DNA from: Setoptus koraiensis
Taxonomy: Eukaryota; Animalia; Arthropoda
Direction: 5' to 3'
Assembly: GCA_048013815.1 (NCBI GenBank)
Contig: CM106586.1
Location: 1,612,001 to 1,676,000 of the forward strand
Length of the DNA stretch: 64,000 bases
The notes below the pieces were generated by a model. The model was given only the letters and a program-made list of their open reading frames with translations, did no database searches and was not told the origin of the DNA. The translations under genes and the position numbers were made by a program. Of the stretch, positions 7,679-64,000 are shown piece after piece; positions within the stretch are counted from its first letter, which is position 1; each line of letters begins with the position of its first letter.

Positions 7679-7949
7679 GTGAGTACTAACACGCAAAAAC
7701 AGCAGCACTACTTTTTTTAGTTGTCGTATTCAAATTTTGTTTCTATTGATTGTTGTTGTCCGTTGTTCCTTTAATTGCACAATTAATAGTTGCAAGCGAC
7801 AATTAGCCAATCCTCTCGTTTGTGTTGAGCAAAACTTAAATGCGCTTTGTCGCAATAATCATAATATTTGTTAATGTTTCCTAGTGTAAATGTAAAAGCA
7901 CGTATGCTTATACATTTGAACAACGGTTGTAAGCAACAAAATGTTGTGA

Positions 7950-33868: not shown

Positions 33869-34402
33869 ATGGGTGATGACGACTGGGAAGTTAAGGATGT
33901 TGTGGATGTTAGATTTAACAAAAAGACTGGTGGAATAGAGTACCAGTTAGAATGGGAGAACTGGGATGGCGATCCAACTTGGGAACCAGAGAACAACTGT
34001 GCCTGTCCCGATCTAATACAAAGATTCCAAGAAGCAAATCCGGACAAATGGAGAGAAGTGCAAAGGCAACGCGACATACATTTACTGCCCAGGAGTCCCA
34101 CACCTACAGCTGCACCAGATACTACCACAACTGGGATCTCTCCTACACCTACACCTTCATCTCCAGTCCCAGCTAAGCAAAAGAATGGGTTCCAAAGGAA
34201 GGCCACATTACAGAAGATTTTAGCTGCTGATATGGTTGATAAATATTTGGTTTTTGTTGTCAAATTTGACGATAGGGACGAGCCTGAGATTATAAGAAGG
34301 AAATCTTGTAAAGGAAAGGGTGATCATGTTGATAAATTAGTGCTCAATTTCCTAACGAAGCGACTCACTCCAGTCATCAAACCAAATAATTACAAAATTT
34401 GA
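33869..34402 (+). CDS. HP1/CBX-like protein: chromodomain + Pro/Thr hinge + divergent chromoshadow domain, 177 aa, single coding exon
   Basis: Chromo: DWEVKDVVDVR...EYQLEWENW...TWEPENNCACPDLIQRF. Chromoshadow-like: GFQRKATLQKILAAD...LVFVVKF...LVLNFLTKRL (HP1 GF.RGLE.EKI+GA...VI.FYEERL). Orthology to a specific CBX/HP1 not assigned. Confidence 0.85.
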   Translation: MGDDDWEVKDVVDVRFNKKTGGIEYQLEWENWDGDPTWEPENNCACPDLIQRFQEANPDKWREVQRQRDIHLLPRSPTPTAAPDTTTTGISPTPTPSSPVPAKQKNGFQRKATLQKILAADMVDKYLVFVVKFDDRDEPEIIRRKSCKGKGDHVDKLVLNFLTKRLTPVIKPNNYKI

Positions 34403-34649: not shown

Positions 34650-37600
34650 ATGTGGCCTGTCAAAGTCAGGCTTGTTTCTTGTAAGCACTGCTTCATAGCC
34701 TTACCCAAGAGGTTTGGTAAAGAGAAGATCTCAGGGAATAACCATGAGGTGCAAGTATTCAAACTGGAACACCTAGACGACAAGGATAAAAATATCACCT
34801 ATGTCTCTTGGAATGGTGCAATCTCAACATCAAACGATCACATCGAAATCGATGAAGCATTCGCTAGTGAGAACGGACTGAAGGAAGATCTATTAGTGAT
34901 CTTGAAACTTCTGAAAAATCAGACTGAAGAGCCCGCGAAAGATTGCTCTCAATGCACTGTTGTGACACCATCGATTGACGATTACGAACTGCTAACCAGG
35001 AATGCGGAGCAAGTCGAAAACCTGTTGATTCATAGTATCAGAGTTGTCACAAATAATCTTCGAATACCATTATGGATATTCAATGGAAACATGAAGATCA
35101 TGATCACAGTTGTCAAGATACATCCACAGAGTTCCAATTATGCTATCTTATCTAATAGGACCGAGCTGAATATTCTAGAGTCGCAAAAATCCCCGTCTTA
35201 TGACGCTGCACCCAGTTCCACAAACTCATCGTTGATGCATCCGGCAAAACAGAATGATAATGTGAAAAATCCATCAATCATCTCATCCATGTTTGGAATA
35301 GTCAAATCTTATATCAATGATTCCAACGCGATAGAATCTCCTGCGCCAAGTGTGCCTCAGCCAGATGCTACCTTATCGACTCATTTGAGTTCGGATTATG
35401 AAATAGATGAACGGCCATTTAGGGTTTCGCCACTGAAAGACAGTGTACTTGATCGACGATACCTTTGTTCCATTCTAGTCAACGAGAAAGACATGGTGAC
35501 TAGCTCTATCGGACCAAAGTCAGATGAGATAATATTGGCCACAGTCACAAAGATACTATCTTACAATGAATATTGTCAGCCAACAGACTCCTCTTCAGAA
35601 AGGGAATCTTCCAAGACAAATAGCGGACTTCATGATAATAAAAAATCTCAATTATGCGAGAGTTATTTTCGTTCAACTACTGTTTTAGTTGTAATAGATA
35701 GCGCTTGTGCTCCTGGCACTTGTCAAGTACCATACAACTTAAGGAGAAAACTAGGGCTTACGATAAGTTCAAAAATAAGTATAGGAGCCGCTAAGAAGCT
35801 GAATCTGAGTCCATCAACCACACTGGATGTTACACCTTTAGATGGAACAAATTCATCGACTAAAACTAGCCAAGATATTTGCTCCATGATACTGTCATAC
35901 ATACAAGATGACTTGGCGGACCGGTTCCTTCTTGTAAACAAATTTACATTGATAACTCTAGGAGGGACTGATTACTTGCTAGATGGAATCGCTCATCAGT
36001 CCTCTACTTTGCCCTATATTAGTGAGACTTCTTTGCAGGACCCAAATAATTTAAATTTGAATTCTCCAATGCTTGCTAGAGTAAATACTTCATACGGACT
36101 CAAACTACCACTCAAGACTATCGTAGACATTGATGCGTCTCTTGGCTTTCAATTAAATGATAATTGCAGCGACAAGGTTGATCAAATGAACGATCTAGTT
36201 TATGGGGACATGTACGCTTCTGTCGATCTAATTATAAAGAAGCAACTTCAACTCACAGACAACTGTTTGCGTAGATCGAAGCCATTCGATTATGGACCCA
36301 TATTATTGCATGGACCTAAGAAAAGCGGTAAAACCTTCTTCATCAATAACATTTCAAAATCTCTTCGTCGGTCAAAAGACTTAATATATACTACAATTCT
36401 TCAATTTAAACAATTGCGAGGCAAGCGTGTAGATACTTTTAGGAAGACATTAGTTAAAGTTTTGGCTGAGTCCTACTATCGTCAACCATCGGTTATATTC
36501 TTCGATGATATAGACTCAGTAGTTGGGAAGGACCTCCGGCACGTAGAGGAAAGGGGTCCTGATAGTATGTATAGAAAACGTGTGATAGCCACTTTCATTG
36601 CTACTTTAGCCCAATTAGAACAAAATAATTTGTGCTTCGGAAACAGAGTTGCAATTATAGCCACTTGTTCATCTCTGGAAAATCTGGATGACCAGATAAT
36701 AAATCTCGATGATAGGAATTACTTTACGAATCTGATCGAAATCATTCCCCCAGACATTGAAAGGAGAGTGGAAATCTTGAAGAACCTCATTAATGATCAC
36801 AAAAATATCGAGTGTCTTTTAAACCATAACAACCTGACTAGCATATCAGAGAAATGTGACCTATTTTTACCCCAAGATTTGAAAACACTATTTGAGAGAG
36901 CCATGATACGAGCAGCTTCTCGCGATAGACTTGATTTTGCCACACAAAACAGCATCAATGTAACTCTAAGCGATCTAGAACAATCTTTAGAGGGTTATAT
37001 CCCCATCCGGTTGAGAGGTGTTACTCTGCAAAAGAAATCTGGAAGAGGGCTAAGTCAGATTGGCGGCATGAAAAATGCAAAGGACACACTTATAGCAACA
37101 GTCTTACTTCCCATGAAATATCCAGCCCTGTTTGGCAAATGCCCGATCAAGTTTCAAACGTCTGTACTTCTGTATGGACCTCCAGGTTGCGGCAAGACGC
37201 TAATAGCTGAGGCTATCGCCAATGAGGTATCATTGAATCTCATTTGTGTTCGAGGACCCGAACTACTATCTAAATACATAGGTGCCAGTGAAGCCGCGGT
37301 GAGAGATTTGTTTGATAAGGCAGAAGCAGCTAAACCGTGTATAGTGTTTTTTGATGAATTTGAGTCAATCGCCCCCAAGAGAGGACACGATTCTACAGGT
37401 GTCACAGATAGAGTAGTGAATCAAATGCTCACAATGATGGACGGTTTCGAGGAATTGAGCAAAGGTATATTTATTTTAGCTGCAACTTCACGCCCTGAAC
37501 TTATTGATCCAGCACTGCTCAGACCGGGCCGATTTGATGTGCATGTTTATTGTGGCCTACCAGATGAGTCGGACCGGCTTGAGATTTTAACTATTGTTTG

Positions 37601-37952
37601 TTCTAAGATCAAGATGGACGATGATGTTGATCTCGGTGCTTGGGCAAAAAATACAAATTGCTTCAGTGGAGCTGATTTACAGTCGCTCATTTATTCTGCT
37701 CAACTAGTGTCACTCAATGAGAAAATCGAAAATACATCTATAGAGAACGCTACCGATAAAAAGACGACTACACCAGAGGAACGGAATCTCGTTGAGATAG
37801 TAGTTGCGAACAGGCATTTGGTGGTAGCACTCAATGATTTACGTGATAGTATAATGAAAAACAATTCCATGTATCATATAGAATTTCCTAAGAACTTTCT
37901 CGCATCAACCACACAAACAGGGATGGTATCCTCCAGGGCTACCCTGGCTTAA
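34650..37952 (+). CDS. PEX1: Peroxisome biogenesis AAA ATPase PEX1, single exon, 1100 aa
   Basis: N-domain with ELLTRNAEQVENLLIHSIRVV and W-containing motifs typical of PEX1; degenerate D1 (GPKKSGKT, IFFDDID); canonical D2 (GPPGCGKT, VFFDEFESIAPKRGHDSTGVTDRVVNQMLT, IDPALLRPGRFD); C-terminal SRATLA. Confidence 0.95.
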   Translation: MWPVKVRLVSCKHCFIALPKRFGKEKISGNNHEVQVFKLEHLDDKDKNITYVSWNGAISTSNDHIEIDEAFASENGLKEDLLVILKLLKNQTEEPAKDCSQCTVVTPSIDDYELLTRNAEQVENLLIHSIRVVTNNLRIPLWIFNGNMKIMITVVKIHPQSSNYAILSNRTELNILESQKSPSYDAAPSSTNSSLMHPAKQNDNVKNPSIISSMFGIVKSYINDSNAIESPAPSVPQPDATLSTHLSSDYEIDERPFRVSPLKDSVLDRRYLCSILVNEKDMVTSSIGPKSDEIILATVTKILSYNEYCQPTDSSSERESSKTNSGLHDNKKSQLCESYFRSTTVLVVIDSACAPGTCQVPYNLRRKLGLTISSKISIGAAKKLNLSPSTTLDVTPLDGTNSSTKTSQDICSMILSYIQDDLADRFLLVNKFTLITLGGTDYLLDGIAHQSSTLPYISETSLQDPNNLNLNSPMLARVNTSYGLKLPLKTIVDIDASLGFQLNDNCSDKVDQMNDLVYGDMYASVDLIIKKQLQLTDNCLRRSKPFDYGPILLHGPKKSGKTFFINNISKSLRRSKDLIYTTILQFKQLRGKRVDTFRKTLVKVLAESYYRQPSVIFFDDIDSVVGKDLRHVEERGPDSMYRKRVIATFIATLAQLEQNNLCFGNRVAIIATCSSLENLDDQIINLDDRNYFTNLIEIIPPDIERRVEILKNLINDHKNIECLLNHNNLTSISEKCDLFLPQDLKTLFERAMIRAASRDRLDFATQNSINVTLSDLEQSLEGYIPIRLRGVTLQKKSGRGLSQIGGMKNAKDTLIATVLLPMKYPALFGKCPIKFQTSVLLYGPPGCGKTLIAEAIANEVSLNLICVRGPELLSKYIGASEAAVRDLFDKAEAAKPCIVFFDEFESIAPKRGHDSTGVTDRVVNQMLTMMDGFEELSKGIFILAATSRPELIDPALLRPGRFDVHVYCGLPDESDRLEILTIVCSKIKMDDDVDLGAWAKNTNCFSGADLQSLIYSAQLVSLNEKIENTSIENATDKKTTTPEERNLVEIVVANRHLVVALNDLRDSIMKNNSMYHIEFPKNFLASTTQTGMVSSRATLA

Positions 37953-45961: not shown

Positions 45962-47446
45962 TCATGTTGGCACTGGTATAGAAGACGATGCTTTTGTTGT
46001 CTGTAGCTTTTGTTGTTGTTGTTGTTGTTGCTGCTGTTGTTGTTGCTGTTGCTGCTGCTGTCGTATGGATAAAGCTGAATTGTTGTTTGCATTATTCAAT
46101 GAAAGCTGCTTCGGTTGACTATTGTTATCACTATTTTGATTGTTATTGTTGAACAACACACTATTAGACCCCATCTGACTTAAGCAGTCAGCGTTTTTGC
46201 CTCCACTACTTGATGATTTGTTGTTCGCTCGAGATGCAGGAGATTCCTGTTGTTGTTGTTGCGCATGCATCTTCATGTGATTATGTAATTCGTCGCTACG
46301 CGTAAATCGCTTTCCACAGTATGACAGTCGACAGGCAATCGGCCGCTCACCTGAATGCCATCTAAGATGTGCTCTTAAGTGAGAGGTTTTAGTATATTCC
46401 TTACCACAACCGGGCACGTGGCACGAGTGCATGTTCTTCTTTGTATCTCCCAATAGGGCACTCAATTCTGGTCCCAGACGTTCCAGTTCTAAGCAATTAG
46501 GACAATCACAACTGACTCGACCTGCGTAACGACGCTGAGACCTGTTTGTGGCCGGTTTGGTCGGATTTGTAGCAGTCTGTTGTGGGTTAGTTGCACTTGT
46601 TGAGCTTGATCCCACTGAGGTTGCATTATTAGCGGGTATCTTAGCTTGAGTGCGTGCTTTAGTAATCTTGGAAGATGCACTGATAGGAGTTACATGCTTA
46701 GATTGTCTATTGCCGATATTTTTGTTACCTTGTTTCACTTTTGGTCCATTTGCAACTAGATTTGTCTTGGTTTGGAGCTGAAAATGTTGGCTTTGTGCAT
46801 CTTGATTCGCGCCACCAATATTGAGCTCAATTTTAATACCATTAGAAGAATAAACACTGGCCGTTTGTTGGCTACTGCTGTTATGATTCTGTTGCTGTTG
46901 CTGCTGATTTTGGACAGCGATCGGGTGTTGATGTGATGAGAAGGTGGATGTTGAACAATAACCAACATTGTAAGCAGTGGCATAGTTAGCGGCATCGTAA
47001 CTAGTGTTTGTGCCGGCCATCATTAATTGTTGTTGATGGTTGTTGTTGTTTAAATGTTGTTGCTCTAAATGATTGCTGCTGAACAGGTGATATGGCGTTG
47101 CATATCCGTGATGATGAGTTTGCCCATTGATGGATTGATGGAGTTGGTCGTCTGCCTGGTACTGCTGATGAAGTTGCTGTTGCTGCTGCTGGTCGTGCTG
47201 GTGATGTTGGTGCACCATTTGATGGTGCTGATAATTAGTTGCTGCTTGCTGTTGGTTAGTGGAACCTTGCTGATGATTGTGGTGCTGATGGTGATGGTTA
47301 TATGGGGCCATCATAGTGGTGAAATTGTTTGATTGTGAGCCAATCTCTGTTGTCTCATTGGCGGCCATGCCGTTGCTTGCAAGATGCTGGTGGTGATGAT
47401 TCGGATGCGATGCCAGTTGTGCCAAATAGCTATCCATGGTAGCCAT
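45962..47446 (-). CDS. Sp6-9-type transcription factor copy A, 494 aa, buttonhead box + only two C2H2 fingers + polyQ tail
   Basis: Btd box [22 protein letters not shown] (Sp6-9 type [14 protein letters not shown]); ZF1 [23 protein letters not shown]; ZF2 [23 protein letters not shown]; no third finger; intact single-exon ORF. Confidence 0.9.
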
Positions 47447-47869
47447 ATTATTACGTTATTATTTTGTCGATGTTGTTGTTGTTGTTATTATTATTCTAAA
47501 ATAATAGTAATGATAAAGATAAAGATCAAAATAAAGATCAAAAACGTTATAGATTGAGGATTGTTCAAACTATATTGTTGTGGGCCGAGCGATTGTGCTG
47601 TTGTGCTTGCTTCTATTTGTGCTTCTATGGTCGCGTTTGATGGGCCCGTTCTGCGCATTTATTCCATGTACGCATGCACTGTGTGCATATATTCGCAACA
47701 CTGAACACTGTACAGTGTGTGTGTGTGTGAGGGTGTTGTGATGCGCACATCGAACAAACTCAAACTGCTGACGAAATTCAAAAAGAGCGCCAATGAACAA
47801 GAGAGTTCGTCAGAGAGTCTCTGGCAGAGAGGTATCAAATTGAGTGACTCGCACACAACAAACATACAA
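46779..47869 (-). repeat. Segment duplicated in the same orientation at ~62796-63874 (5' flank + N-terminal half of the Sp genes)
   Basis: By-eye alignment, roughly nine in ten bases identical including ~420 bp upstream of the ATG. Similarity drops abruptly after codons [18 protein letters not shown]. Confidence 0.92.
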
Positions 47870-50800
47870 CTTGAACTAACCAGACTAACTCAATTGGACT
47901 CAACTTGATACTGGCTACCTCGCTCCCTCCCTCCCACCAATGTTGCTGCTGCTGCTGCTATTTATATATTGTCACGCCCAGCACACACAGTCTCAATTCG
48001 CGGCAACGAAAAGGGTACCGCCTGGCAACTCTTTGTTGTTACATATAAATAGTGTATATTTTATGTGATGATACACGGTGGTTGCAGTCCGTTGCCGACG
48101 TATATTGTTGCCGCTCTTGATATTGGTAGGTGGTTGTTGTTGTTGTTGTTGCCGGTGCCGGCGCGCTGCCTCCCTTGTGCGCGAGGCCAGTTGTGCACGA
48201 GCCACGGCAAGGCTGGCACCATCTTCACGAGACATCATTGGGCACCAGTGAGCAGAACGAGCTCTTTGACGTTTAGCGCGAGTCGGGAGAGAAAGCGAAA
48301 AAGGAAAAACGAAAACGAATATCAACGAGAACAACAACAACAATGAGTAGTGATACTTAATTATAGGCCGTCGGTTGCACACAGCTTGCAATTGTAGAGG
48401 CGCCAGTTCGCGGCAATGGGAGCAATATGATGAATAACAACGACCAACGGAAATGACGGCGTTGCCAATCACGAGCGAGCGAACGAACGGCTTGCAATTG
48501 ATGTAGCGCAATGATGTAGTAAATTGGCATGTTGTGCACACTATGAGTGAGGAGCGAACACAGTTACCCGTTGTGTCGCACAATAGGAAGTGTGCGAGTA
48601 TATAGGCCGATTAGCCGATGCCTTCCCCCTGTGAGAGTGAGCTGCTTATGTTGCCGAATTGAAATTATTATATTCTATTTGCTGCTATCTGTTTGGTGTG
48701 TCGCAATTTTTATGCACACACACACACACACACAATTCGCACGCACTTAATTCAATTGGGCCGGAATAGTGGCGTCAAATTGATGCAACTCGGACGCTAT
48801 TAGGTCGTGAGATGAATAGAATGCGTGTGAGTTTGTCGTTGCGCAAATTTGTGGTTCGCGTAATTGAGCGACTAGCCACTGCACGAAGCTGTGTTATGCT
48901 CATTCTGTGCGCGATTGTGTGCGCATCACGACCTCTGTGCAGTAGCTGCTATATATACAATATAGGCACATGGGAAAATGGCATCTGTTGATGGCTGCTC
49001 GAGTGTCGTTGCACAAACAAAGCAAGCGATATTCACAATAAATACGACCATTTTGTATAATTGTCTTGTCGGACAAAAATTAAAAATTAATTTCAAATGA
49101 CAGAATCTTAAGTTTGAGTTTTATCTCTGGTGACTTTTCGATGGTTTGATTAATTCAGCTGGCTCGAGTGCGAACAAGCACCAAGAGGAAAAGGATGGGC
49201 GACGGGCGTAATGAATTTTATCATTTGAGATGAGGATATTCTCACTAAATTACATCTCGTTATAGGTGGACATGAGCGGCTGCTGGTCACTCGCAACATA
49301 TCATGAGTTAACAATTATTATAATATGCTCCTAATGAACTAGCACAGGCTTGCGTGTCCGGCGTTGACGTGACCAAAACTTACCGGCGTGTCCACTTTGT
49401 AGCAGCCACTTGCTACTTGCCACTGGAATGGGCAGTGCACCCAAGCCTGAATGTGACTCCCCTAATGGCAGCAGTTTGATGATGTAAACAACAGGCAGCA
49501 ACTGTAACTACCATGACGATCAATATACGCGTCGTAACACCAGATCATGACCATTATAGTGAGGGCACCGTGAAAAAAATGAAAAGATGACGTTGTGCAC
49601 ACCATATACACATTGTCACCTATAACAGCTATGTGTACATCAATGTTCTCACAACCAAACAAGATAGGTGGACAGGTAACAATAGCCTTGATCGTGGTGC
49701 TTGTATACTCTGTGATATTGTTATGGCCAAGCCAGAGAAGCAGCGAGCAGCCAACAAAAGGACATTAATATAAATGGAGCCAATGGAACAAAAACATTTA
49801 TTTCATATTTTGCATTTAGCCTTTTCGGTAGCAGTTTTTTGTGTGTTCACCTTTGCATCAACATTTGTGTGAACTCTGTATAGCTAATGCAAATGAGTGT
49901 GTGTGTGTGTGCCACCAATTGCGGCTCGCAAGCAATTATGCAACGACATGAGCATGCATAAAGACAAGACATGACAGCTTGCAACAAAAAAACAACTGAC
50001 ATTAGCTGCAAAAAACATTAATACACACAATATGTTAGGTAAAATGATGCGGAGCTGATAACTAGATGCTCTCCCATTGCATTTGTGCACCCATTTCACT
50101 CATGATCGCACGCACTTTGATAAGCGTCTCTATACGTCTGCAAGCAAGCCATATGTCATTATAGGAACGGCACCAGTCAAATGGCAACATGACGGCCATC
50201 GTCTGGTTTCATTCCCCACTCCAAACTTTGCGGTCCAAAGAGCGACACAGACAGAGCCAACGATCAACTCAATGGCTCGTCATCAATTCGGCTGGGCTAA
50301 TTAAGCTTATTCACACAGATACACTTGACATCATCATTGGCCAGTCTGCCACAATCGGCGTCAATTATGGGAAGCGCCAACAAACCAATACAAGGCTGAC
50401 TGGCTGGCTGGCTGGCCGGCCGGCTTCTGTTTCGGCAATAATTGGTGCAATAAGCACAACTCAACTCACTCGCTTCTCTTGCATACGCTTGTTCGAGTTG
50501 ATCGAGTATTGCACTGGTGCTAGATAGACTCGCCGCGGAGAAGTGCTATAGAGATAGTCAAAAGCAAGTATTGACAATATTCATCAGGATGAAAATTGTG
50601 TTTGCAAGCAAGTCTGTCAATTTATCAAGTCGCAACTCCGTCGGTGCTCAGTGCATATGTGAAGGGATTTTATTTGGCCTCATCACGTCTTTGGAGCGAC
50701 AATTGCGCCAACAGTTTGGATCAGCTGTATGTGGTGGAAAGACAACAGGACTTTGTAGTGACTTGCTTGACTTGGGCTAGTTACAAGTCTGGTCTAATTT

Positions 50801-53800
50801 AGTCTAGCCTGTTGTGGCAATCAAAGAGTGACTGTCAATCAGATGAGCCGGCCTGCCCGCCCGCCTGTCACTCAATCAGCCAAACAGGGTGGCCAGCTGA
50901 TGGGGTAGCTCGGACACAATTTGGCTACTCTACAGCAACTCCAGCTGACCATTCACTTCACCGGCTGACCGGTAGTGAAGAAGTTGAGCTGATTGTGAGT
51001 GCAGAAGCGGAATATCGGCACACAAGAAATAGGAGCTTGTCCTGTGAGTTTGCACAGACAGATGTGTCAGTGAGACAGTGTTGCCAGGTAAAACTGGAAG
51101 GGGTTTCTCTGTATCGCTTACCTTGTGATGTGTTTGACCGTTCATCAGTCGCTTCTTCTTCTTCCTTCAACTAAAATTATCAACTACAATTTCAGCCCGA
51201 CTGAGCCTAAAAGTCAGCTGAGTATTGAGTCAACGTTCACAACAAACCAAACAGGTGACCAGCAAGCGATTGTGTGGGATTAGAAGTGCGAATGCAATTT
51301 GCTGGCGCGAACACAACGAACGCAAATCGCTACGAACTGCCGCTACGAACTCTAGCGATGAGTGCTAAATTTTCGGCAGGCAAGCAGACAGATAGATAGA
51401 AATAATGAGAATGGAGAACAACAAAAAACAATGCAAATACATTGTCTATTCGACAATCGGACCAATGGAGGCGCGTTGAACTGCAACTGAGGCTGCAAAA
51501 GTCTGTGTCAGCGGAATATTGGAGTAGCAGCCAGCGACATGGAGATGATGATAATAGTGATGATCACCTTTCATTAGCGTTAGTTTGCCGCCGCCATTGA
51601 CCATTACCACAGCTAAACCGACTGTTCATCTGGCTGCATTTTGGAAAAGCGTCAGACAGATATAATAAGTCTGCTGCCGCCGCTGCTATCCAATTGCAGT
51701 TGTCGGCGAACGTGTAACATCAACTTCAAATTTCGAACCTGGGCTCATATACCAACTCAAACCGGACTGCCAGTGACACTGCCAGTAAGTGTTGGCTGTC
51801 GCTGCCAGACGACCGAGATGAGACAGACTGGGCCGGTTTGGCGCTAGACGACACTGGCAAATTGATAATGATAATAATAATAATGTGACCATCGCACCTA
51901 TAAAGATGCACGTTTTGCGCACGCCTCACGCTCGAGTGACATTCTTGCACGGGTTCGCTCTCTCTCTGGCGTGTTGTCAGAGAGATTATACATATGCAAG
52001 ATATGTTGTAGCATATACGTTGTTTTCGTGATGTATTGTGCCTCAGTAAATGCAACTAGTGGAGCCATGCAAACGAGCACAGTTACCTTTGTTTGGTGGC
52101 TCTCGTGCAACTTTACCTGGCTCTCTACCTGTCTGATATGCATGCATTTATTGGCACAGTTGAATATGCAAAAGTAGAGTAATTGAATTGGCGCACAATG
52201 GTCATCTGCTGGCCTGGCGTTGCGCGCGAGCTGCCCAGCATATGCTAATGATGCCATGCGATGCCGTGTGATGCCATGTTGTGGCCGCTCATCACAGGTG
52301 ATGACTCCGTCTGGCGCTAGTTATAGATTTCGGCCGCAGTTGAGACCATGATTAATGTAAATGGATCCGCGGCCGACGCTTAGAGCGGAGGGCGTGCGTC
52401 TTGGAGTATCACGGACACGGCCAAAGTGAGACAAAGTATCCTGCGAGTATCCACTTTCAGCTGGGCTCCACACCAGTCACACCGCAGGCCTGCTATCTGG
52501 CCAAATAAAACTGCGAATGGCCAAGAAGCGCCAGGTAATTAGCGGTAAAATGAGCGGTATAATTAACTAACGATAAATCATCATTTATTTCTCGTTGTTT
52601 GCTTGCCGCTGCTCGCCGCGTGTGTGTGTGTGTGCTGTCAGCCATCATTTGGGCCAGTCGCAGCCCTCAGCCCAATTTAGCTAACCCAATGCCTGGATTT
52701 AGTGATTGGTCTTTGCTCGTGTTGGCCCGAGCCGGCCGAAATTCAGCGATTTCAGTTACACATTCAGTCCATTTGCTTATTGTGGCCGGCGTGTCACAAC
52801 CTAACGCTCACCTGAAGCAGCCCGGCCAATATGTACATACGTATATAGTCCTGAGGCGCTGTTTGTCGAGACTGCACAATTGCATCATCGCCCAGTCCGC
52901 TATAGTGATGAGTAAAATGAGAGTCTAGTGACTGCTGTAAGTAACAACATTAGGCAACAGCAGTCATAATGAGTCGCTGGCTCGAGCCGCCGAAGCAACA
53001 AGATTTGCCAGAAAAACCAAATAAAGAATATCGATTACCGAATATTGTAGAGAATTGTGTTTGCTAGCGTCGCTGGTTAGCGCCAGTTTGTTTGTTGCGC
53101 TATAGCTACAACAACAGCAACAGCAACGGCAACAACAATTTCAATAATAATCAATAATAATCGCTCGCCTCTAATATGGCCCGATGGAGCCTGGCCCTAT
53201 TAGAAATATCAGACACAATTATGGCATTGTGGCAATTCGTTTGCAGTTGGTAAACGTTGCCAGTAAATTATATGTTGCGTTTTTGCGCACACAACACGTT
53301 TAAAGTTTGAGCTGTGAGCTCTTGAAACGGAAAAGTTCATCTGTTTGCTCTTTGCTTTTTATCACTTTACAAGCAGAGTAATACATGGATCGAGCAGGAA
53401 TATTGTGTGCGTCTGGCAAGCCGACACAGAATCAACATCAACTGGCATGAGTGCAGCTGAGGGGACAATGAAATGAATCCAAGTGAATCAATCACTATCA
53501 ATTATTGGATAGCTATTGGATATCCATGCCACACAATGGCTAGAATAAAATGGATAGATTTGCACCGTTACAGCCATGAAATATGATGCCATGAGCGGGC
53601 ATGAGATGACTCTTCTTTGTTCGCTTCGTTGGCCGGCCGTTTGGTTGGTTGGTTGGCTGCTTTCGTTGCCATCGGAACGTGATTTACTTCTTTTTTGCTG
53701 GCGACGTTCCATCGTTGGACTTGCCTCATCACGACCCATACAAACTCAGCCTGCGAGTTTGTGCAACGTCCAAAATGAAAATTACAGCCTGCGCTCGTAG

Positions 53801-55837
53801 CCTATATATCGGCCATTTGGGCCCCCGTTGTAGCTGCATTTGTTGTTGCCGTTGTTGCTGTTGCGCCAAACAAACGATTGCTTCAGAGTGCATTGATTTT
53901 GCCCATTATCCGCTCTTGTCATTGTATTATCGGGCGTGATGATGATATAGAAACATATTTCTATATGGTCGGGCAAGGCATTGTTGCATTGTCGATTGGT
54001 CGAGCTAGTGCGAGCGTGATCTTACAAAAGAAGCGCACAAAAGAAGCGTGCTTTTTTGTTTGTTATTGGGCAAGCGAGCCAGCCGAGCAGACGCACACTT
54101 GTTTTATCGCTTCAATGTATCTTTTAGCTCGATGGCAACATGTGGTATGTCGAGGTGCACTGATGTGCACGCAATATCGCCGACAATGGTCGACAATTTA
54201 AACAATCAAAGTGGCATGGCGAATAATGGTTCACTAGGCGATGTGCCCAATGTCAATAGCGACGACAATAGGCACGCCTCTGATCGCTAAAGTGGCGAAT
54301 AATGATAATAATGCTCCCAGATAAAGCAGCGAATCTGTGGCGACGCGCGCAGACAAAGAATGCGGATTTGTTGAGATCGAGCGGTTTGTGTGTCATTTGT
54401 TTGTCGTGCGAGTCATGCGATATCTTGCATTATCCGACAGTGTCAATGTGACCGTTACCAACTCAACGGTACGTGATAATCTGCGATCGTGTCGCATGCA
54501 ACCCATAGTTAGAGGAGGAAAGTTACACGCATTTTAGTGACACAGTGTATATTATCAGTGTGTCGCCTCGTATGCCAACAATGGCCAGGCAACCTGTTCA
54601 TGGTGCATCAATAGTCTAGTCGGCGTATTGTAATGGTCAGTTGATCAGGTGCCGCCAGGGGGCTGACAGTGTCATCGGAAAGAGCAAACACAAGCGATGG
54701 TAAACAAACAACTTTGGTTTGCATTGAACAGACAGCGAGTAACGTTACACTTTGCAAACAATATGTTGCTGTGTCGCAATTGTTCATTGTTTTAGCTACG
54801 TCATGAGCTCGCTTCTAAGGTTACATTACGTCAGCACGTATCCTTGAATAGGTGTCATGTGTCAGCTGGTTCGTTTATATAGTTTATATAGTGTGTGTGT
54901 GTTGAGTCAACAGTCGACAGTGAACAATCATGAGCATGAACCAGTGAACAGGTTGCATAATAGCTGTTAAGTGGCCGCCAAAGTGAGTAGCTCATAAGTG
55001 AATAGTTATTATTGGATTAGGCAGCTCATTTCTCAAGTGACTGCTGCTTTATAATTGCATAACGTGGGCGGATAGTTGGCATCCTTGATTTGTTGGGATC
55101 ACATTGAAAGTGACTGTGAGATATGCGGGTGTTGACGCGCATAGTATGACGCTCATACTGTGACGCTACCATTGCGATATGGCCCGCTCATTGTGGGACG
55201 AGTCGGTGAATTATGCGCATGATGATACATGTGCAATTGTGTATTATGTGTATATCGAGAAGTGAATCAGGTGGCGAGCGAGCAACACCTTGTTAATGTG
55301 TGACGATAACGTATGGCAACGCTTAAAATGCAAATGATTGGCAAGAGGCAACGAGCCAAAAACAATGATACTGGCATGCGTATGGCGCCTATACACTTAC
55401 ACTTGTTAAGAGGGCAATAGGCGTGCTGTTGGCAGCACTTGAGCCACCTATTACCTGGCCCAGCTCACCTGGCTACCTCACAGCTGAGCTGGCCTTACCT
55501 GTCGGCACAGTGAGACTGGGTGGTCGACGGACGAGGCATGAGTGACTGCACTGACACAGCTTGTAAGAAGCTTCAAGTGGCCAGGCCCACTCACTCATCA
55601 TACTATTTGAATTCAGCAACTGCACAGACAGATGATGATCAAGCGGTCATCTGGTGGCAAGTTCAAAAGGAGCATTATTATTATTAAGGGCGCCACCTTG
55701 TAACACGCAAGGCACTGTTGCGTGAACTGAAACATTAGCGTATATCGTGTTACTGCTGCTGTTGCATGCACGACCGAGTGGCACCCATCGCTGGCTAGCG
55801 AAACTGGCCAACGAGTCGGCCACTCAACCAATCGGCC

Positions 55838-55879
55838 AGTCGGCAAGTCGGCGAGTCGGCGAGTCGGCGAGTCGGCGAA
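55838..55879. repeat. 8-bp tandem repeat (GAGTCGGC)~5
   Basis: agtcggcaagtcggcgagtcggcgagtcggcgagtcggcga. Confidence 0.9.
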
Positions 55880-58140
55880 TAAATAAAAGAAGAACAAAAG
55901 TCAAAATGACAAGGGGAAGGGCGCCAGGTGAGAATCACACGAAAATCAATTGTGTCTCATAGCGAGAGAAGCGAAAGTTGTTGGCTTCTTCTTCTTGCTT
56001 GGCTGACTTGTCTTATTCTCTCAGCCTTCTATTTCTTGTCTACAGTCTTCTCATCTAGTGTACATGCCAAGCTTTTGTTGTTGCCAGTTACAGTTTGCTG
56101 CCAGTTTAAGTGACTTTTCTAAACTTGTCAGCCACACACACACTGGCAGTGTGGCCAAATGAGTGTGAATGAATCACAGTTTCACATCTACATCATTGCC
56201 AATATAGCACCGAGCCAGTGATAAAATAAAGTATAATGTAAATCGATCGAGTGAACGCATTCCAATAGATTGGCACTGTGTGGCAATTTGTTCACTTGGC
56301 TAGACCGTCAATGTCTTTATCTTGTCAGTGGACGCTGCCGGCGACAAGTTTGCACCCAACAGAACTCACTCTCGCTAAGAGTGTGTCGCTAAAAGTAGCC
56401 GTGAGATAATGCGCTCGTTGTGGCTTTCTGGGCCCACTCACATATACTCATACAAACATACTCAGTAGTCAGTTGTCAACGAGGGCGACTACTCAGAGCT
56501 CACAATACACATACACACCACACCGTGAGGCAGCGTCCCATTCGAGCTGGCCCTTCCGTATTGCTTGTGTGGCGCCTATAGAGTAACTAATAACTTTGTC
56601 TACTCTCACTTGGTCACGCCATATAGGCAGCCTATAGTGTAATATAATAATAATATTATTATAATCAACTCTTCGTCTGCTTCCAGCATGAAAGTTGGCG
56701 CCAATTTCGGGCCAACTTTCATACATACTCTACTGATCTGGCTACTATCATTGCTATCATACCAATATAGAAAGCCCAATATAAATATTAAACACAATAC
56801 AATATGTAATAGTCGATACTATCGGCTATGTTTCCATAATTATGGTTAATTAATTTCATTCTGTGTGCAATTCACTGCGCCTATTCTGTTCGCCTATAAA
56901 TCTAGTGAGAAAATGTAGTTTTTAAACAGTCATTATCGGCTCATTAAACTGATTAAATGGATTTGTTACGATACAACTGTGCGTATGTTGTGCTGGTTTT
57001 GTTGCGTCTACAACTAGCAGCGATCAGCTATCAGCGTTGCACAACAACAACTACAACAGCAACAACAGCAATATTAAACAATAACAACCATAAAAATATA
57101 ATAGTAGTAATAATAGTTTCAATAATAAGAGCTGCGTTGTCATTGTTTTAGCTACTGCTGACCAGATGCCACTCGCCCCCTACCGGTGGGCACCATTTAG
57201 ATTAGTGGGTTGACGCCGCCCTTTTGGTTCGCTTCACTGACAACTCACTGGCTTGTGAGCTGTTGTGTTGTGGCTCTGGCGAGTGACCACACTGTGACCG
57301 GTCACAGATACAAAAATAGCCAGGCGTAAGGTAAAATAAAAAAGGCGCCTCTAGGAATGGGCAGCAAACACGGTTGTTGCAGTTGTTGCAGTTATAGTGG
57401 CAGTAGTACCAACAACAACAGTTGTTAGCCGCGTGAAAGTTGGCCTCTCAAACTATGAAACTGCGCTCTCACAGTTGGCCCCCTCCCCCTTACCTGTTCG
57501 TAGTGTCATATTGAAACTGGCCAGTATATTACACAATGAGACTTGTCAGCTGGCAGCAGCGGCTTGTCAACTAACAGTGGCACGTGTGTGAGTGCACTGA
57601 GCTGAGTGATCGATTTAATTGTATGGCCAAGTTGCATAAGTTGCATAAGTGGTTGTAGTGAATTGCGTAACTCACGCAATACACATTTCGCAATTTGAAT
57701 CAGGCTTTATAAGCGTATACACGGCGCGACACGTTTCAGTGTTTTTACAGCCTAGTTACACAACAACATGCACACACTCAGTTGAACATACAGTAGCTCA
57801 TAGCTCTAATTAGGCCTAGGTGAGTGATCGAGACACACAAACAATAACAGCAACAACAGTGGTGGCATGATAAAGGTCACTATTGTGCAACTAATCGCAA
57901 GGCTAACACAATGTGCACTATAAATTGTGCCTATAACACTCTTATCAGCGTGCTCTTGCTCTGTCGGTTGCAAGCTTTTGGCCGCTAACCATGACCATTG
58001 GTAACAAAACGATGAATAATAATTACGTAAGCAGCCAAAGCCGCAACAACGCAAGTGTTATTATTGGATTAGTTAGCAATGGCAATTTGTGGCAAAATGT
58101 GCAAACAATTAATCATTCAACTGATTACCAATCGATTAGT

Positions 58141-58172
58141 GCACGCTGACCACTGTTCAGTGGTCAGTGTGC
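58141..58172. repeat. 32-nt near-perfect hairpin
   Basis: gcacgctgaccactg-tt-cagtggtcagtgtgc; the single stem mismatch is a G-T(U) pair. Confidence 0.85.
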
Positions 58173-59690
58173 AGTGCCAGACTAAGACTAGCTGAGGCTA
58201 ATAATAGCAATAATAACCTATATTAAGTAGTATAATTACATGCTACCAGCGACTGCATGCAAATGCCGCCACCTTAGTATCGACTAACTGAATCTAATGT
58301 AATAATCTCTCTCTCTCTATCTCTTGCCCGCCTTGCTCGTCTCTCTCGGGCGACACGCCGCCCCAAATTAGCGCTCTCTAATTAGAACCTATCAACTGGC
58401 TTAACGAATCCACTCTAGTTGCGCCACGCTCAAGATGCACTCTCGATGCAAACTTTGCCACAACATATCTATATAATGGGTGCTGTTTATTGTGCCATTA
58501 GCTGGCATCAACTATCTTGCAGCTAGCAGAAGCCCCAAGCAAGGCTCGCAAAAATTCAACTGCACCCATAATTCCGTGCCACTTCTGCAACTGGGATAAA
58601 GCTTGGTGTTTTTTAAATTCAAGCACACGCACAAAGCGCCCTGTTACGTAAGCAATTTATGCTAGGCGCAATGAGAGTAGCAATGCAAGTAGTGGTAGTA
58701 ATGATAAATAGATGGCACACTTAATAGTGGCAACAAGCAGATAATTTAGCAGTGCCTGTGACCCAGGCGAAGGTCAGCTCTCTCTCTCTGTCTGCCTTTT
58801 GTGTTGTTCGCCAATATTAGCCAAGTCAAAGAACGAGCCTGTTTAAGTGGGCCGAAGAAGCTGAAAAAAGGCAAAAAAGGAGCTGTCAGGATGGCCGGCG
58901 AGCAAAATGAAAGAAGTTATTTTATTTATGCAAAGTGCGGATCTTTTTCCTCGTCATGTCGAATCCGTCATTGCACCAAACAACAACTGATAGTTGCGCT
59001 ATCATTTTATACATTTATACATTTGTGCATTTATACACTTGTCATGCATGTTCGGCTGTACATTTGCTTTGCTACATTGTAAGACGGCATACGAACGATG
59101 ATACGAAATGAAAAATGATACCAACTGACTCGTCGAAATCTCTCGCGTCTCTATGCAGCAGCTCGCGAGGCTTCCGCTGACTCGATAGCCTTTGTCCAGT
59201 GCTGGCGCATAGCGTTGCATTTTTGCTTCTTCTGTCTTGTTACACTTTCGGAATCACATCTCCAGATTCTGGAGTCCAGAAGCGATTGGCCGAAGCATTT
59301 GAGACGATTCGACCATCAGGCGCGGTTCTTCAACAACAGTACCAGACCAAGAGGGCAGGCCGGCCAACTGGCCCATCATTTGAGTGGTCGTCATCATCTG
59401 GTGATGGTGATGATGATGATGATCCACAGTCAGTTATCGCAAACTGTTATTGCTATACCGGCCCATTCTAATTGAATAATACCTGGGCCCGATAAATGGC
59501 TGAATTTGGCTGATAGTTTGCGATATTTGAGCGTTTCAAGTGACCGATAGAGGGCGCGCATCGTATTTCACATAGGCGTCATTGGTTGTGGTGCGGTGAT
59601 GAGGCCAGCAGACTGTAATAACTAGAGTATGGTGATTGGAACAGTTCAGTTTATAAACAGGCTCCTCTCTAACGACTGCGCTTCTGACGA

Positions 59691-59765
59691 CAACAGCAAC
59701 AACAGCAGCAACAACAGCAGCAACAACAACAGCAACAACAACAGCAACAACAACAACAACAACAA
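59691..59765. repeat. Compound CAA/CAG trinucleotide repeat
   Basis: Direct reading; reverse-complement type of the 26227-26295 repeat. Confidence 0.9.
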
Positions 59766-60821
59766 TTCGGATGATCCGACAGCCACAGCAGAAGCATCGC
59801 AGTCTTTATTCTGTTGTCAGTCTGTTTTGGCGTTGCTGTCTCTAATATATCATTATCTTGTTTCATGATCCAAAAACAAATACAACAGCGACAGTATAGA
59901 AGAAACTTGCGCCGACGACGACCAAGTGGAAGTAACAAATGACAAGCACGTTGTTGGCGTTGTTGTCAGTGGTCGTCGGTAGTTTCAGACTGTCGGCTGT
60001 GTCTGCAGTGTGTAATGTGAGAACAAGTCAGTCTATGTAAGGCCAGACTAGTGAGTTTTTTAGTTGCTGCTGCAAAGAGAGATTCGCTCAATAGTTGCCG
60101 TTGTTGTCACACATTGAAGCGCTCTCTTTTGGCCTCTCACTCGCTCGCTCTCTCCAAACACATCTCATTGTGGAAACATCTGAGACGGCCATGATCAAGA
60201 CTTGACGAAGATTTAAATTCGCTCACTTTTGCTTGTCATCTAGCTGTTGCCATTTCTACCGGTCGGCCCAACTCAGCTGATCCGATGCTCGTCAAATTAG
60301 GCAGACAGCGCGCTCTGCCTGGCGAGCAATTATCGTGTTGTCGGAGGGCGACCCTTCTTTCTCGCTCTTGCTGTCGTCGTTGTTGCTGTTGTTGTTTTTG
60401 TCTCACTATATGTAGATGCTTCAGACATAAACACACAGGTACAACAATCATCCTTGATCCGCCAATAGCTGACTGCTTGATTGGGTATGCGGCTGCACAA
60501 AGAATCGCACACAAGAAATCGCGCAAAGTACATTCGAGAGAAATCAACAACAATTGACTAGTTGGCCAAATCAAGGTGACAGGTGACGGCGATATCAGCT
60601 ATCATGTACGTATGTCTGGCCTGTCTCCTACTGAGCACTCTGCCAATGGTGGCTCTACATAGGATAGCTGATACAATGAAACACACCGCTAGGTGCTATA
60701 GGTCAGCGCACATGGTCTGGGTCGCTTCATCAACGTACATAGTTCATAGCAAGTATACATGATATAAATATATTTCATCAATAGTACATTTTATTCATAG
60801 TCTACATGATGCAACGTACAT

Positions 60822-61890
60822 TTAATGGAACCAGACCAGAGCCACTTCTAGCAGACAAAGAACAAAGTTTCGTTCATTTTCGCGCATAACCAAGTCATCC
60901 GTTTCAAATAGAAGACGGCCTAAAACATGAATTGAGCGACACCAATTAATAAAGTTGCACACATTGTCACGGGCGAGGAATGTTCCACTGTCTGCATTCA
61001 ATTTATGGGAAATATCTATGATCTTGTTCCAAAGTATCCGCAAATATTTTACATTATTCGACTTCATTCAACAAACTGTCTCTCTTCAACATTGAACTTT
61101 CTGCATTGGACAATTCGTGAGTGGCTGTAATCATGGCAGAGGTATTATTATCTACATGGGTATTACTTTTAAATATTAATTTTGTAGTTGATGGTTTTAA
61201 TTGACTTGAAGGCAGATTTGTTGATAGTAATGTTGGTGTTTTGATGAAAGCGAGCAATGACGACTTCCTTGCTGGTGTGGTGGAATCAATCTTTTTAGAT
61301 AGACTATTGGTGGTAGCTGTAATAGTTGATGAGGATTTAGTAACTTTTGGTGATGAGCAGTTTACTGAATTCAAACGATTTATATCACAATTGCCGACAT
61401 CTTTGCCAGTTGACTGACACTTGACTACCAGTGGTTCACTGTGGAGTGGGTGACTGGTGTGTCATGTGGGCACTGGCGACCTGGACGAATGGGGCGATGA
61501 TGAACTCGATGAGCCTAAATCAGACGAAACAGAGTGATGTGAGCTGGTCAAGAGTCCTCTTTTTGCTACATTTGTGTAGCAAAAAGAGACAGAGAGGAGA
61601 ATCGATTGTCATTATAAATATCTAGATTGCCGTAGAATCGAAAGGCCATTCAGCCGGGTCCTCTTTCATATCATACAACTATTGACGTTGGATTTGAATG
61701 GCCTAGGCTCAGTTGTTGGGTGCTGTTTTTATGGCTATCGTGAGGACATCCTGTGATGCAGGACGAGCTACGATGACTGGAGCTCTCATCTGATGAGCTT
61801 GAGGCATCCGAATAACTTTTTCAGAGCAATGCCAGACTGTTATTGTTTGTAAAAAGATCACTTTGGTTCGATGATTGATTGGTCAGTCGG
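60822..61890 (-). pseudogene. Inverted, internally deleted pseudogene copy of GAS2-like exon 1 (source ~5910-7470)
   Basis: Minus translation gives [49 protein letters not shown] and NSVNCSSPKVTKSSSTITATTNSLSKKIDSTT. 61261-61380 matches 6836-6955 at 115/120 nt. Frameshifts, a GGA>TGA stop and several deletions. Confidence 0.93.
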
Positions 61891-62251
61891 GACTTATGAC
61901 ACAAACAACTATCTATTGTGTGATGTTCGGTACGTAAATTTGTCACTCATCCAGCGAATAGATTGTATATACCATGAGGAAGATTTAACAGCAAATGCAT
62001 CATGTCGACAAAGACTACATCGTTATTTAGATTATCAAAGTCTAGGAATATGTAAGAGTCTAAAATTACAATGTATAACACTGACAAAATATAGTCGAAT
62101 ATATATGTGAATATAGTCGAATCACCTGTATTTCGATAATCGGTACATACATCGTACACTGCAAAATGACTTTATTGAATGCCAATAGATGGCGCCTCGA
62201 TCGGTGCAAAATTTTATTTGTGCTTCTTCTCCTATATTTCTTTATTATTTC

Positions 62252-63463
62252 TCAATTTTGTAACGATTTTGTGGATGCGTGAGTTTTCATATGTTTGGTC
62301 AGATGATCCGAGCGCATAAATTTCTTGGTACAAATCTGACACAGGAACTTCTTCTCTCCCGTATGGGTCCTGGTGTGTCGGTGTAGTTCGTCGCTACGTG
62401 TGAACGCTTTTGTGCACGTGGACCATCCACAAGCGAATGGTTTTTCGCCCGTGTGCCACCTCAAATGGGCCTTCAAATGTGAAGTTTTTCCATATTCTTT
62501 GAAGCAACCGGGCACATGACAACAGTGCATGTGCTTCTTAACGGTACCATTTGTGATATCGCCATTGGCACCATTAGTTATGGTGGAAATGGAGAGATCC
62601 GGCGGCATTCTTTCCAATTTCAAGCAATTGGGACAATCACAGGTTGCGCGACCAGTTAGGCGACGCTGCAATCTAGTGACAGTTGGCTTGCTTACTGCTG
62701 GCTTGGTAGTTGTGGTAGTGTTGTTGTTATGGTGTATTTGTGTGTTATGTAATTGTGTTGGCTGGTTTTGTTGTATTTGTTGTTTGTTGTTTGCTTGAAA
62801 CTGTTGGCTTTGCGTATCTTGATTGGCGCCAATGTTGAGCTCAATTTTGATACCATTAGAAGAATAAACACTGGCTGTTTGTTGGCTACTGCTGTTAGGA
62901 TTCTGTTGCTGCTGCTGCTGCTGTTGATTCTGGACAGCGATCGGGTGTTGATGTGGAAAGGTGGATGTTGAACAATAGCCAACATTATAAGCAGCAGCAT
63001 AGTTACTGGCATCGTAACTGGTATTTGTGGCCATCATTAATTGTTGCTGATGGTTGCTGTTTAAATGTTGCTGCTCTAAATGATTGCTGCTGAACAGGTG
63101 ATATGGCGTTGCATATCCGTGATGGTGACTTTGTCCACTGATTGTCAGATGGACTTGGTCGTTTGCCTGGTACTGCTGATGAAGCTGTTGCTGGTCGTAT
63201 TGGTGATGTTGGTGCACCATTTGGTGGTGTTGATAATTAGTTGCTGCTTGCTGTTGGGTAGTGGAACCTTGCTGATGGTTGTGGTGCTGATGGCTGTGGT
63301 GCTGATGGTGATGGTTGTATGGGGCCATCATAGTGCTGAAATTGTTTGAATGTGAACCAATCTCTGCAGTCTCATTGCCGGACATGCCGTAGCTTGCAAG
63401 ATGTTGGTGGTGATGATCTGGATGCGATGCCAGTTGTGCAAAATAGCTATCCATGGTAGCCAT
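62252..63463 (-). CDS. Sp6-9-type transcription factor copy B, 403 aa, buttonhead box + three C2H2 fingers
   Basis: [14 protein letters not shown]; [81 protein letters not shown] with canonical Sp recognition helices KTSHLKA/RSDELHR/RSDHLTK; AATAAA (tttatt on +) at ~62171 downstream of the stop. Confidence 0.93.
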
Positions 63464-63874
63464 ATTATTACGTTATTATTTTGTCGATGTTGTTGTTATT
63501 ATTGTTCTAAAATAATAGTAATGATAAAAGTAAAGATTAAAAACGTTATAGTTCGAGAATTGTTTGAACTATATTGTTGTGGGCCGAGTGATTGTGCTGT
63601 TGTGCTTGCTTCGATTCGTGCTTCTATGGTCGCGTTTGATGGGCCCGTTCTGCGCATTTGTTCGATGTACGCATGCACTGTGTGCATATATTCGCAACAC
63701 TGAACACTGTACAGTGTGTGTGTGCGTGTGTGTGTGAGGGTGTTGTGATGCGCACATCGAACAAACTCAAACTGCTGACGAAATTCAAAAAGAGCGCCAA
63801 TGAACAAGAGTTCGTCAAAAAGTCTCTCGCAGAGAGATATCAAATTGAGTGACTCACACACAACAAATATACAA
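62796..63874 (-). repeat. Second copy of the duplicated Sp 5' flank/N-terminal segment
   Basis: Aligns with 46779-47869 with substitutions and small repeat-length indels. Confidence 0.92.
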
Positions 63875-64000
63875 AATGATGAGTCTAATGTTTAGCTCGA
63901 ATCGATGCTCTCATTAGTAATAATATTACATTACAACATTCTCGTGATAATATATGAAGAATTCGTGCTCCACTCGACGCTGACAACAACACTGGACAAC

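Follow-up and report, generated by a model that had tools for sequence, protein, structure and literature searches.

The stretch analysed here, referred to below as the window, comprises 64,000 nt of the eriophyoid mite Setoptus koraiensis (assembly GCA_048013815.1, contig CM106586.1, positions 1,612,001 to 1,676,000). It equals G000:C2:1612001-1676000 of an assembly of 48,755,295 nt in two contigs, and positions without a prefix are those of the whole stretch. According to the list of open reading frames (ORFs), two zinc-finger genes of the Sp6-9 type, A and B, are present as a tandem pair 16 kb apart, both on the minus strand, in the same orientation and intronless, which fits the massive intron loss described in eriophyoids (PMC7738191). 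The subject of this analysis is the difference in age between the 5' and zinc-finger halves of these two genes, together with the copied segments found around B. The two genes and their domains are as follows.

45962-47446 (-): copy A, an uninterrupted Sp6-9-type ORF encoding 494 aa, in which a Btd box precedes two C2H2 fingers and a Q-rich tail (ORF list, Pfam zf-C2H2, Sp6-9 consensus alignment)
46493-46534 (-): Btd box of A, residues 305-318 (protein alignments)
46265-46423 (-): two fingers of A, the second an apparent hybrid of finger 2 and finger 3 (Pfam, tblastn)
62252-63463 (-): copy B, an uninterrupted Sp6-9-type ORF encoding 403 aa, in which a Btd box precedes three canonical C2H2 fingers (ORF list, Pfam, alignments)
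62627-62668 (-): Btd box of B (protein alignments)
62279-62521 (-): three canonical C2H2 fingers of B (Pfam, consensus alignment)

In Pfam, C2H2 fingers were the sole domain type in both proteins. The protein identity between A and B was ~88% over the first ~225 residues, the next 45-80 residues were unalignable, and identity was ~65% from the Btd box through finger 2. After its two fingers, A continues with a Q-rich tail of 100 residues.

Zinc-finger halves of A and B

In both A and B the Btd box (C-x-C-P-x-C, preceded by basic residues) is located directly N-terminal of the fingers. Compared with the consensus of 96 Sp6-9-type matches, the Btd box and the inter-domain stretch have the Sp6-9 form and not the Sp1-4 form R[VL]ACTCPNC. 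The best database matches in a search of 5.8 billion proteins were Sp8/Sp9 proteins, reached via the finger region only, and the assignment to Sp6-9 is based on these signature residues and on the identity of the best matches. Among the 84 near-invariant columns of the 96 canonical Sp6-9-type proteins, 27 were changed in A and 22 in B, with 12 changed in both. At 6 of these 12 columns A and B carried the same derived residue, where independent change would give about 1, indicating that the finger halves go back to a single Sp6-9 gene of this lineage that was already derived. Read from these residues, the finger halves of A and B are true old paralogs duplicated within the lineage, in agreement with the earlier note, which had proposed an old Sp6-9-type pair. 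No further Sp6-9-type locus was found in the 48.76-Mb assembly beyond A and B, and neither finger half has a third copy or a recent donor anywhere in it.

For the N-terminal 225 aa, no relative was found by word search or by a HMMER scan of 1.84 billion representatives, and the BLASTP match to scorpion Sp9 (E = 0.33) was not significant. Residues 7-13 (YLAQLAS) only vaguely recall the Sp box.

Three consecutive C-terminal C2H2 fingers were found in B and not in A, and no third finger or remnant of one was detected for A within 8 kb downstream by tblastn, including as a downstream exon. The last finger of A (46265-46345) starts as a finger 2 (C-x4-C, RSDEL) and ends as a finger 3. In tblastn, finger 3 of B aligned to it, with the endings HMKMHA in A and HMKTHA in B. 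Such a hybrid suggests that A lost one finger unit long ago by an in-register deletion. In addition, Arg is usual at helix position 6, but the second finger of A has Asn there; with two fingers and this substitution, DNA binding by A should be shorter and altered. In B the recognition residues of all three fingers are canonical, and the protein is expected to recognise GC/GT boxes as other Sp6-9 proteins do.

Other genes of the Sp/KLF type in the same genome were also inspected, with the exons of split genes read one by one, unjoined. An Sp1-4 orthologue carries the RLACTCPNC form of the Btd box; its first exon (L027:1764-3050; G000:C1:2327764-2329050, -) contains glutamine runs totalling ~60 residues and ends directly after finger 1, so that an intron is kept there, unlike in the intronless Sp6-9 pair. 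KLF-like genes are present without a Btd box. A small three-finger Sp/KLF-like gene (L020:1265-1941; G000:C2:4154363-4155039, +) also lacks this box and is split by one short intron after finger 1.

Shared 5' module and its age

The sequence shared by A and B forms a module of ~1.09 kb, M1, which includes the proximal 5' flank and the N-terminal half of the coding region.

46779-47869 (-): M1 in A, putative donor, made up of 423 nt of 5' flank and the first ~222 codons (blastn; two copies genome-wide)
62796-63874 (-): M1 in B, patch presumably copied in, made up of 411 nt of 5' flank and the first ~222 codons (blastn, divergence estimates)

In blastn, the two copies of M1 were 87.5% identical over 1120 columns, whereas the finger region (46284-46441 vs 62382-62539) was 69.6% identical over 161 nt. 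The first 55 codons contained 8 replacements; of the 47 codons with the same residue in both genes, 5 differed synonymously. Over the 33 codons of finger 1 and its linker, 26 codons had the same residue, and 16 of these differed. Estimated by the Nei-Gojobori method, the synonymous divergence (dS) over the N-terminal 215 aligned codons was 0.33 and the non-synonymous divergence (dN) 0.047; over the 100 codons from the Btd box to finger 2, the proportion of synonymous differences (pS) was 0.90, which is saturated, and dN was 0.31. Since this method inflates dS in Q/H/N-rich sequence, sites were also counted directly: 9/56 four-fold sites differed in the N-terminal half vs 14/20 in the finger half (Fisher p = 2e-5), and 28/192 vs 36/64 same-residue codons (p = 2e-10). 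The change from young to old took place within one 15-codon step near A codon 222. In the 5' flank (47447-47869 vs 63464-63874), 4.7% substitutions were counted over 403 aligned nt, with 4 additional indels.

The mosaic of a young 5' half on an old finger half is therefore real and far beyond chance, where young is meant in a relative sense, as the neutral divergence of M1 is ~0.08-0.18 per site. The earlier note had placed the switch at ~46779 and ~62796, in agreement with the blastn alignment, and its codon counts for the first 55 codons and for finger 1 with its linker were reproduced exactly. Its description of a much younger 5' flank and N-terminal half and of an abrupt switch holds as well, and a uniform dS along the genes, which would have spoken against the mosaic, was not observed.

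Both ORFs have stayed open since the copy, with dN/dS of ~0.14-0.26. In the coding part of M1, all seven indels are multiples of three (3, 6, 3, 3, 3, 9, 15), compared with 4/12 in the non-coding flank of M1 together with M2, a copied non-coding segment upstream of M1 in B (listed below); trinucleotide slippage may contribute to this pattern. Non-synonymous differences (24/527) were less frequent than four-fold differences (9/56, p = 0.002) and than differences in non-coding M2 (p = 0.01). Considering the open frames, the in-frame indels and the low non-synonymous divergence, both genes look functional; the constraint was measured on the pair and not on the A or the B lineage separately.

The 5' flank was also more conserved than M2 (p = 0.03), most clearly at −350 to −120 from the ATG. 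This block of ~230 nt (47566-47796 / 63583-63803) differs by ~6 substitutions and a (CA)n length change, and it holds an initiator-like (Inr-like) TCAGT, at −258 in A and −240 in B. The block as a whole is a candidate transcription start or 5' untranslated region (5'UTR) element kept in both genes. Its conservation may mean that the 5'UTR or core promoter of both copies is constrained, or else that a second, later copy event took place.

Copied segments around the B locus

To describe the surroundings of A and B, the sequence was extended to 124 kb and compared with itself, counting duplications from 70 nt and 75% identity upward. Six internal duplications were found in the 124 kb, each with one partner inside the B locus at 60839-64777 (3.9 kb), and no patch other than M1 was found at the A locus. 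The four donors lie at −55 kb for patch G (inverted), −16 kb for M1, +14 kb for M2 and +48 kb for patch D, in mixed orientations, with all copies inside 60839-64777. Besides M1, the parts of this locus and their partners are as follows.

60839-61899: patch G, part of a CH-domain gene copied in inverted orientation (76-93%) and with its frame broken, consisting of two overlapping ORF pieces in different frames
5902-7457 (+): donor of patch G, inside an intact CH-domain ORF of 877 aa (5087-7720)
61952-62042: patch D, a 91-nt copy (90%) of Ric8/synembryn coding sequence 48 kb away (G000:C2:1722360-1722450)
62043-62795 (-): B core, 753 nt with 209 nt of 3' flank and the Btd-box/finger half, with no recent partner in the assembly
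63864-64777 (window part 63864-64000): patch M2, a 914-nt copy of window-equivalent positions 78185-79112 (G000:C2:1690185-1691112)
63864-63874: M1/M2 junction, ~11 nt of microhomology, CAAATATACAA, present in A, B and locus C (three-way alignment)

The putative source of M2, locus C, is non-coding and lies 14 kb further up, with 8.0% substitutions between the copies; like M1, M2 is present in two copies genome-wide. In the three-way alignment, the similarity between A and B stops and the similarity between B and C starts within one and the same stretch of ~11 nt. M2 ends abruptly on its right, as does M1 on its coding side, where B continues with a degenerate CAA-rich tract whose only outside match is a simple repeat. 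On the 3' side, G and D are separated by 52 nt of unassigned filler. The Ric8 gene that contains the partner of D is intact, its Pfam match spanning residues 2-446 of 447. The substitution divergences of the patches were 0.047-0.082 for M1, 0.080 for M2, 0.104 for G and 0.099 for D, and transitions exceeded transversions in the differences between patches and partners.

A candidate fifth patch at 62709-62796 was rejected, its only match being a simple repeat of the (TTG)n type, and no Rfam families were found in either locus. Outside the cluster, two small abutting patches were located at window-equivalent positions 67191-67502 (L013:3191-3502), 2.4-2.5 kb beyond M2, the first of 104 nt with 88% identity to G000:C2:955198-955299 (minus strand, 700 kb away) and the second, weaker one of 199 nt with 74% (73.6%) identity to window-equivalent positions 84605-84816. 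The 877-aa CH-domain ORF at 5087-7720 (+) belongs to a dispersed family with copies of 70-79% identity on both chromosomes (e.g., C1:18955609, C2:194254 and C1:7694125).

Elsewhere in the window, a 177-aa chromodomain ORF (33869-34402, +) is located directly upstream of an intronless gene for a PEX1-type AAA ATPase of 1100 aa (34650-37952, +). The only close database relative of this ATPase is one 78%-identical protein from a Logan contig of 5970 nt.

Origin of the mosaic

The whole of these observations is best explained, with moderate confidence, by a repair event using several templates, in which the 5' module of A was grafted onto the finger half of B. Under this explanation, A and B would have arisen by an old duplication within the lineage and would be the only two Sp6-9-type genes of this mite; much later (~0.08-0.18 substitutions per neutral site ago), the 5' end of B itself would have been replaced. 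The replacement would have taken place by non-homologous, microhomology-mediated repair or replication from several nearby templates, similar to the template switching of fork stalling and template switching (FoSTeS) or microhomology-mediated break-induced replication (MMBIR). The proximal 5' flank of A and its first ~222 codons would have been templated as one piece, landing in frame on the Btd-box/three-finger half of B at the CAA-rich tract and being joined upstream, via the 11-nt microhomology, to the 914-nt non-coding copy from 14 kb further up, while scraps of the CH-domain and Ric8 genes were added directly 3' of B around that time. What results is a pair of proteins whose N-terminal regions are nearly the same, as is their proximal promoter or 5'UTR, but whose DNA-binding ends differ.

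For the direction of copying, the donors of G and D lie inside intact genes and the copies at B are short or frame-broken, indicating transfer into B for these two patches, and B is most likely the recipient in general. The ends of M1 and M2 overlap by ~11 nt that occur in A as well as in C, as predicted for a template switch at the recipient. The patches have diverged to a similar degree, which one complex event or a short burst would allow but which proves neither.

Several points weigh against this explanation. Microhomology is readable at one junction only, that between M1 and M2, and low-complexity CAA sequence prevents a precise reading of the 3'-ward end of M1. The junctions are known from the assembly alone. 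The single event is deduced solely from similar divergences with wide errors, and the direction of copying and the assumption of an old B in situ are polarised only indirectly.

The earlier note had proposed that the 5' half was overwritten, with gene conversion as one possible route. The copied younger 5' half is borne out, but classical conversion is disfavoured, because no homology is found past the upstream end of the tract (no similarity of 47870 onward to 63875 or 64778 onward) and the 3' halves, ~50-70% identical, share no exact word longer than 12 nt. It could be argued that homology-dependent conversion or unequal crossing-over homogenised the 5' half of two tandem genes in the same orientation, that the finger half escaped through selection keeping the DNA-binding domains different, and that the other patches at B are unrelated later insertions; the block at −350 to −120, more similar than the coding part, could then reflect a second, later conversion. 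However, the tract ends within 11 nt of the start of another copied segment, and crossing-over would be expected to leave a third gene or a deletion, neither of which is seen, so this account is unlikely, if still to be reckoned with. The opposite direction, in which the 5' module of B is native and contiguous with M2, A was overwritten from B and C obtained M2 separately, would agree with B as the canonical three-finger gene and thus the likelier original, and M1 itself holds no information on polarity. This direction requires two independent copy-outs from B ending within ~11 nt of each other, a coincidence expected about 1 time in 100, B is demonstrably a recipient of Ric8 and CH-domain fragments, and A has no other patch around it; it is considered rather unlikely. 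B as a whole could also be a young composite locus whose finger half was templated as well, from a third old Sp6-9 paralog lost or missing from the assembly. The 753-nt core is indeed flanked on both sides by patches of similar age, but the two-chromosome assembly contains no donor and an extra gene loss would be required, which makes this quite improbable.

Since assemblers err at junction-rich loci, a mosaic made by chimeric reads or a mis-join was also considered. The patches differ from their partners by 5-10% with more transitions than transversions, which does not fit read-level donor chimeras, an overlap of 11 nt is not long enough to mislead an assembler, and the chimeric ORF is open with all coding indels in frame; an artefact is therefore very improbable. 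The loss of a finger and of a contact residue in A points to relaxed constraint on its finger half, in favour of the view that A and B are whole-gene duplicates of a single age with a merely faster-evolving finger half. That account is practically untenable and is refuted by synonymous and four-fold sites that are saturated in the finger half only, which faster protein evolution cannot cause. Capture by a transposon (a Pack-TIR element or a Helitron) was rejected, as no terminal inverted repeats (TIRs) or target-site duplications were found, the flanks of the patchwork sharing only simple-repeat 11-mers, and as the structure is composite and single-copy with all donors local. Tandem-duplication and deletion-junction models for M1/M2 were rejected because the partners are on the wrong sides (A left, C right) and because R1 and R2 have no shared sequence.

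Following the proposed graft, A and B share a presumed effector N-terminus and ~420 nt of proximal flank, with all distal flanks different. Consequently, the shared promoter suggested in the earlier note can apply at most to this proximal flank, that is, to a core promoter; it fails for all sequence further upstream. In arthropods, Sp6-9 is a key gene of appendage outgrowth and a leg-gap gene. A far-reaching idea is that one template-switch event made a working hybrid regulator, placing the N-terminal effector region and core promoter of A on the three-finger domain of B in one step. A and B would then be a matched pair in which the two-finger form competes with or modulates the three-finger form through shared partners, and the missing two leg pairs of eriophyoids could be connected with such rewiring of a leg-gap gene; as a whole, this idea is a long shot. 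More generally, multi-template repair of the proposed kind is a known type of event, and the locus would be a good specimen of it without a new principle. It would provide a clean natural example of error-prone multi-template repair yielding more than junk, with a proximal promoter and half a coding region swapped in frame between ancient paralogs and a product that survived under purifying selection, and hence a concrete way in which domains of transcription factors could be reshuffled in one step. In this four-legged mite, Sp6-9 is present only as two very derived copies, one with three fingers and one with two, sharing the same front half, which makes their paralog-specific expression and DNA binding worth study.

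With regard to known systems, the Sp6-9 subfamily of Sp transcription factors includes vertebrate Sp6-Sp9 and Drosophila Sp1 (Schaeper et al. 2010, PMC3087555). Like its members, A and B have a Btd box of the Sp6-9 form (RR-x-x-GR-x-x-C-D-C-P-N-C ... ERLGP-like) followed by C2H2 fingers, and B retains three fingers with canonical recognition residues. Unlike them, A and B have an N-terminal region of 225 aa with no detectable relative and at most a vague likeness of the Sp box, 22-27 of the 84 otherwise near-invariant columns are altered, A has two fingers only and both genes are intronless. The pair also resembles cases of partial interlocus conversion with a conversion-resistant domain, in which one part is young and near-identical and the other anciently diverged, but the A/B tract has no flanking homology and its end coincides with a segment from a third locus.

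In FoSTeS/MMBIR and chromoanasynthesis, complex rearrangements are formed by replication template switching (reviewed in PMC6371609). The B locus is similar in its short, abutting segments templated from within ~±55 kb in both orientations, in the microhomology at one of its junctions, and in having a chimeric gene as a by-product. It differs from these cases in that the event is fixed, old (5-10% diverged), germline and in a mite, with a mechanism deduced from sequence, and in that its chimeric gene arose by swapping parts of ancient paralogs in frame and has been kept under purifying selection.

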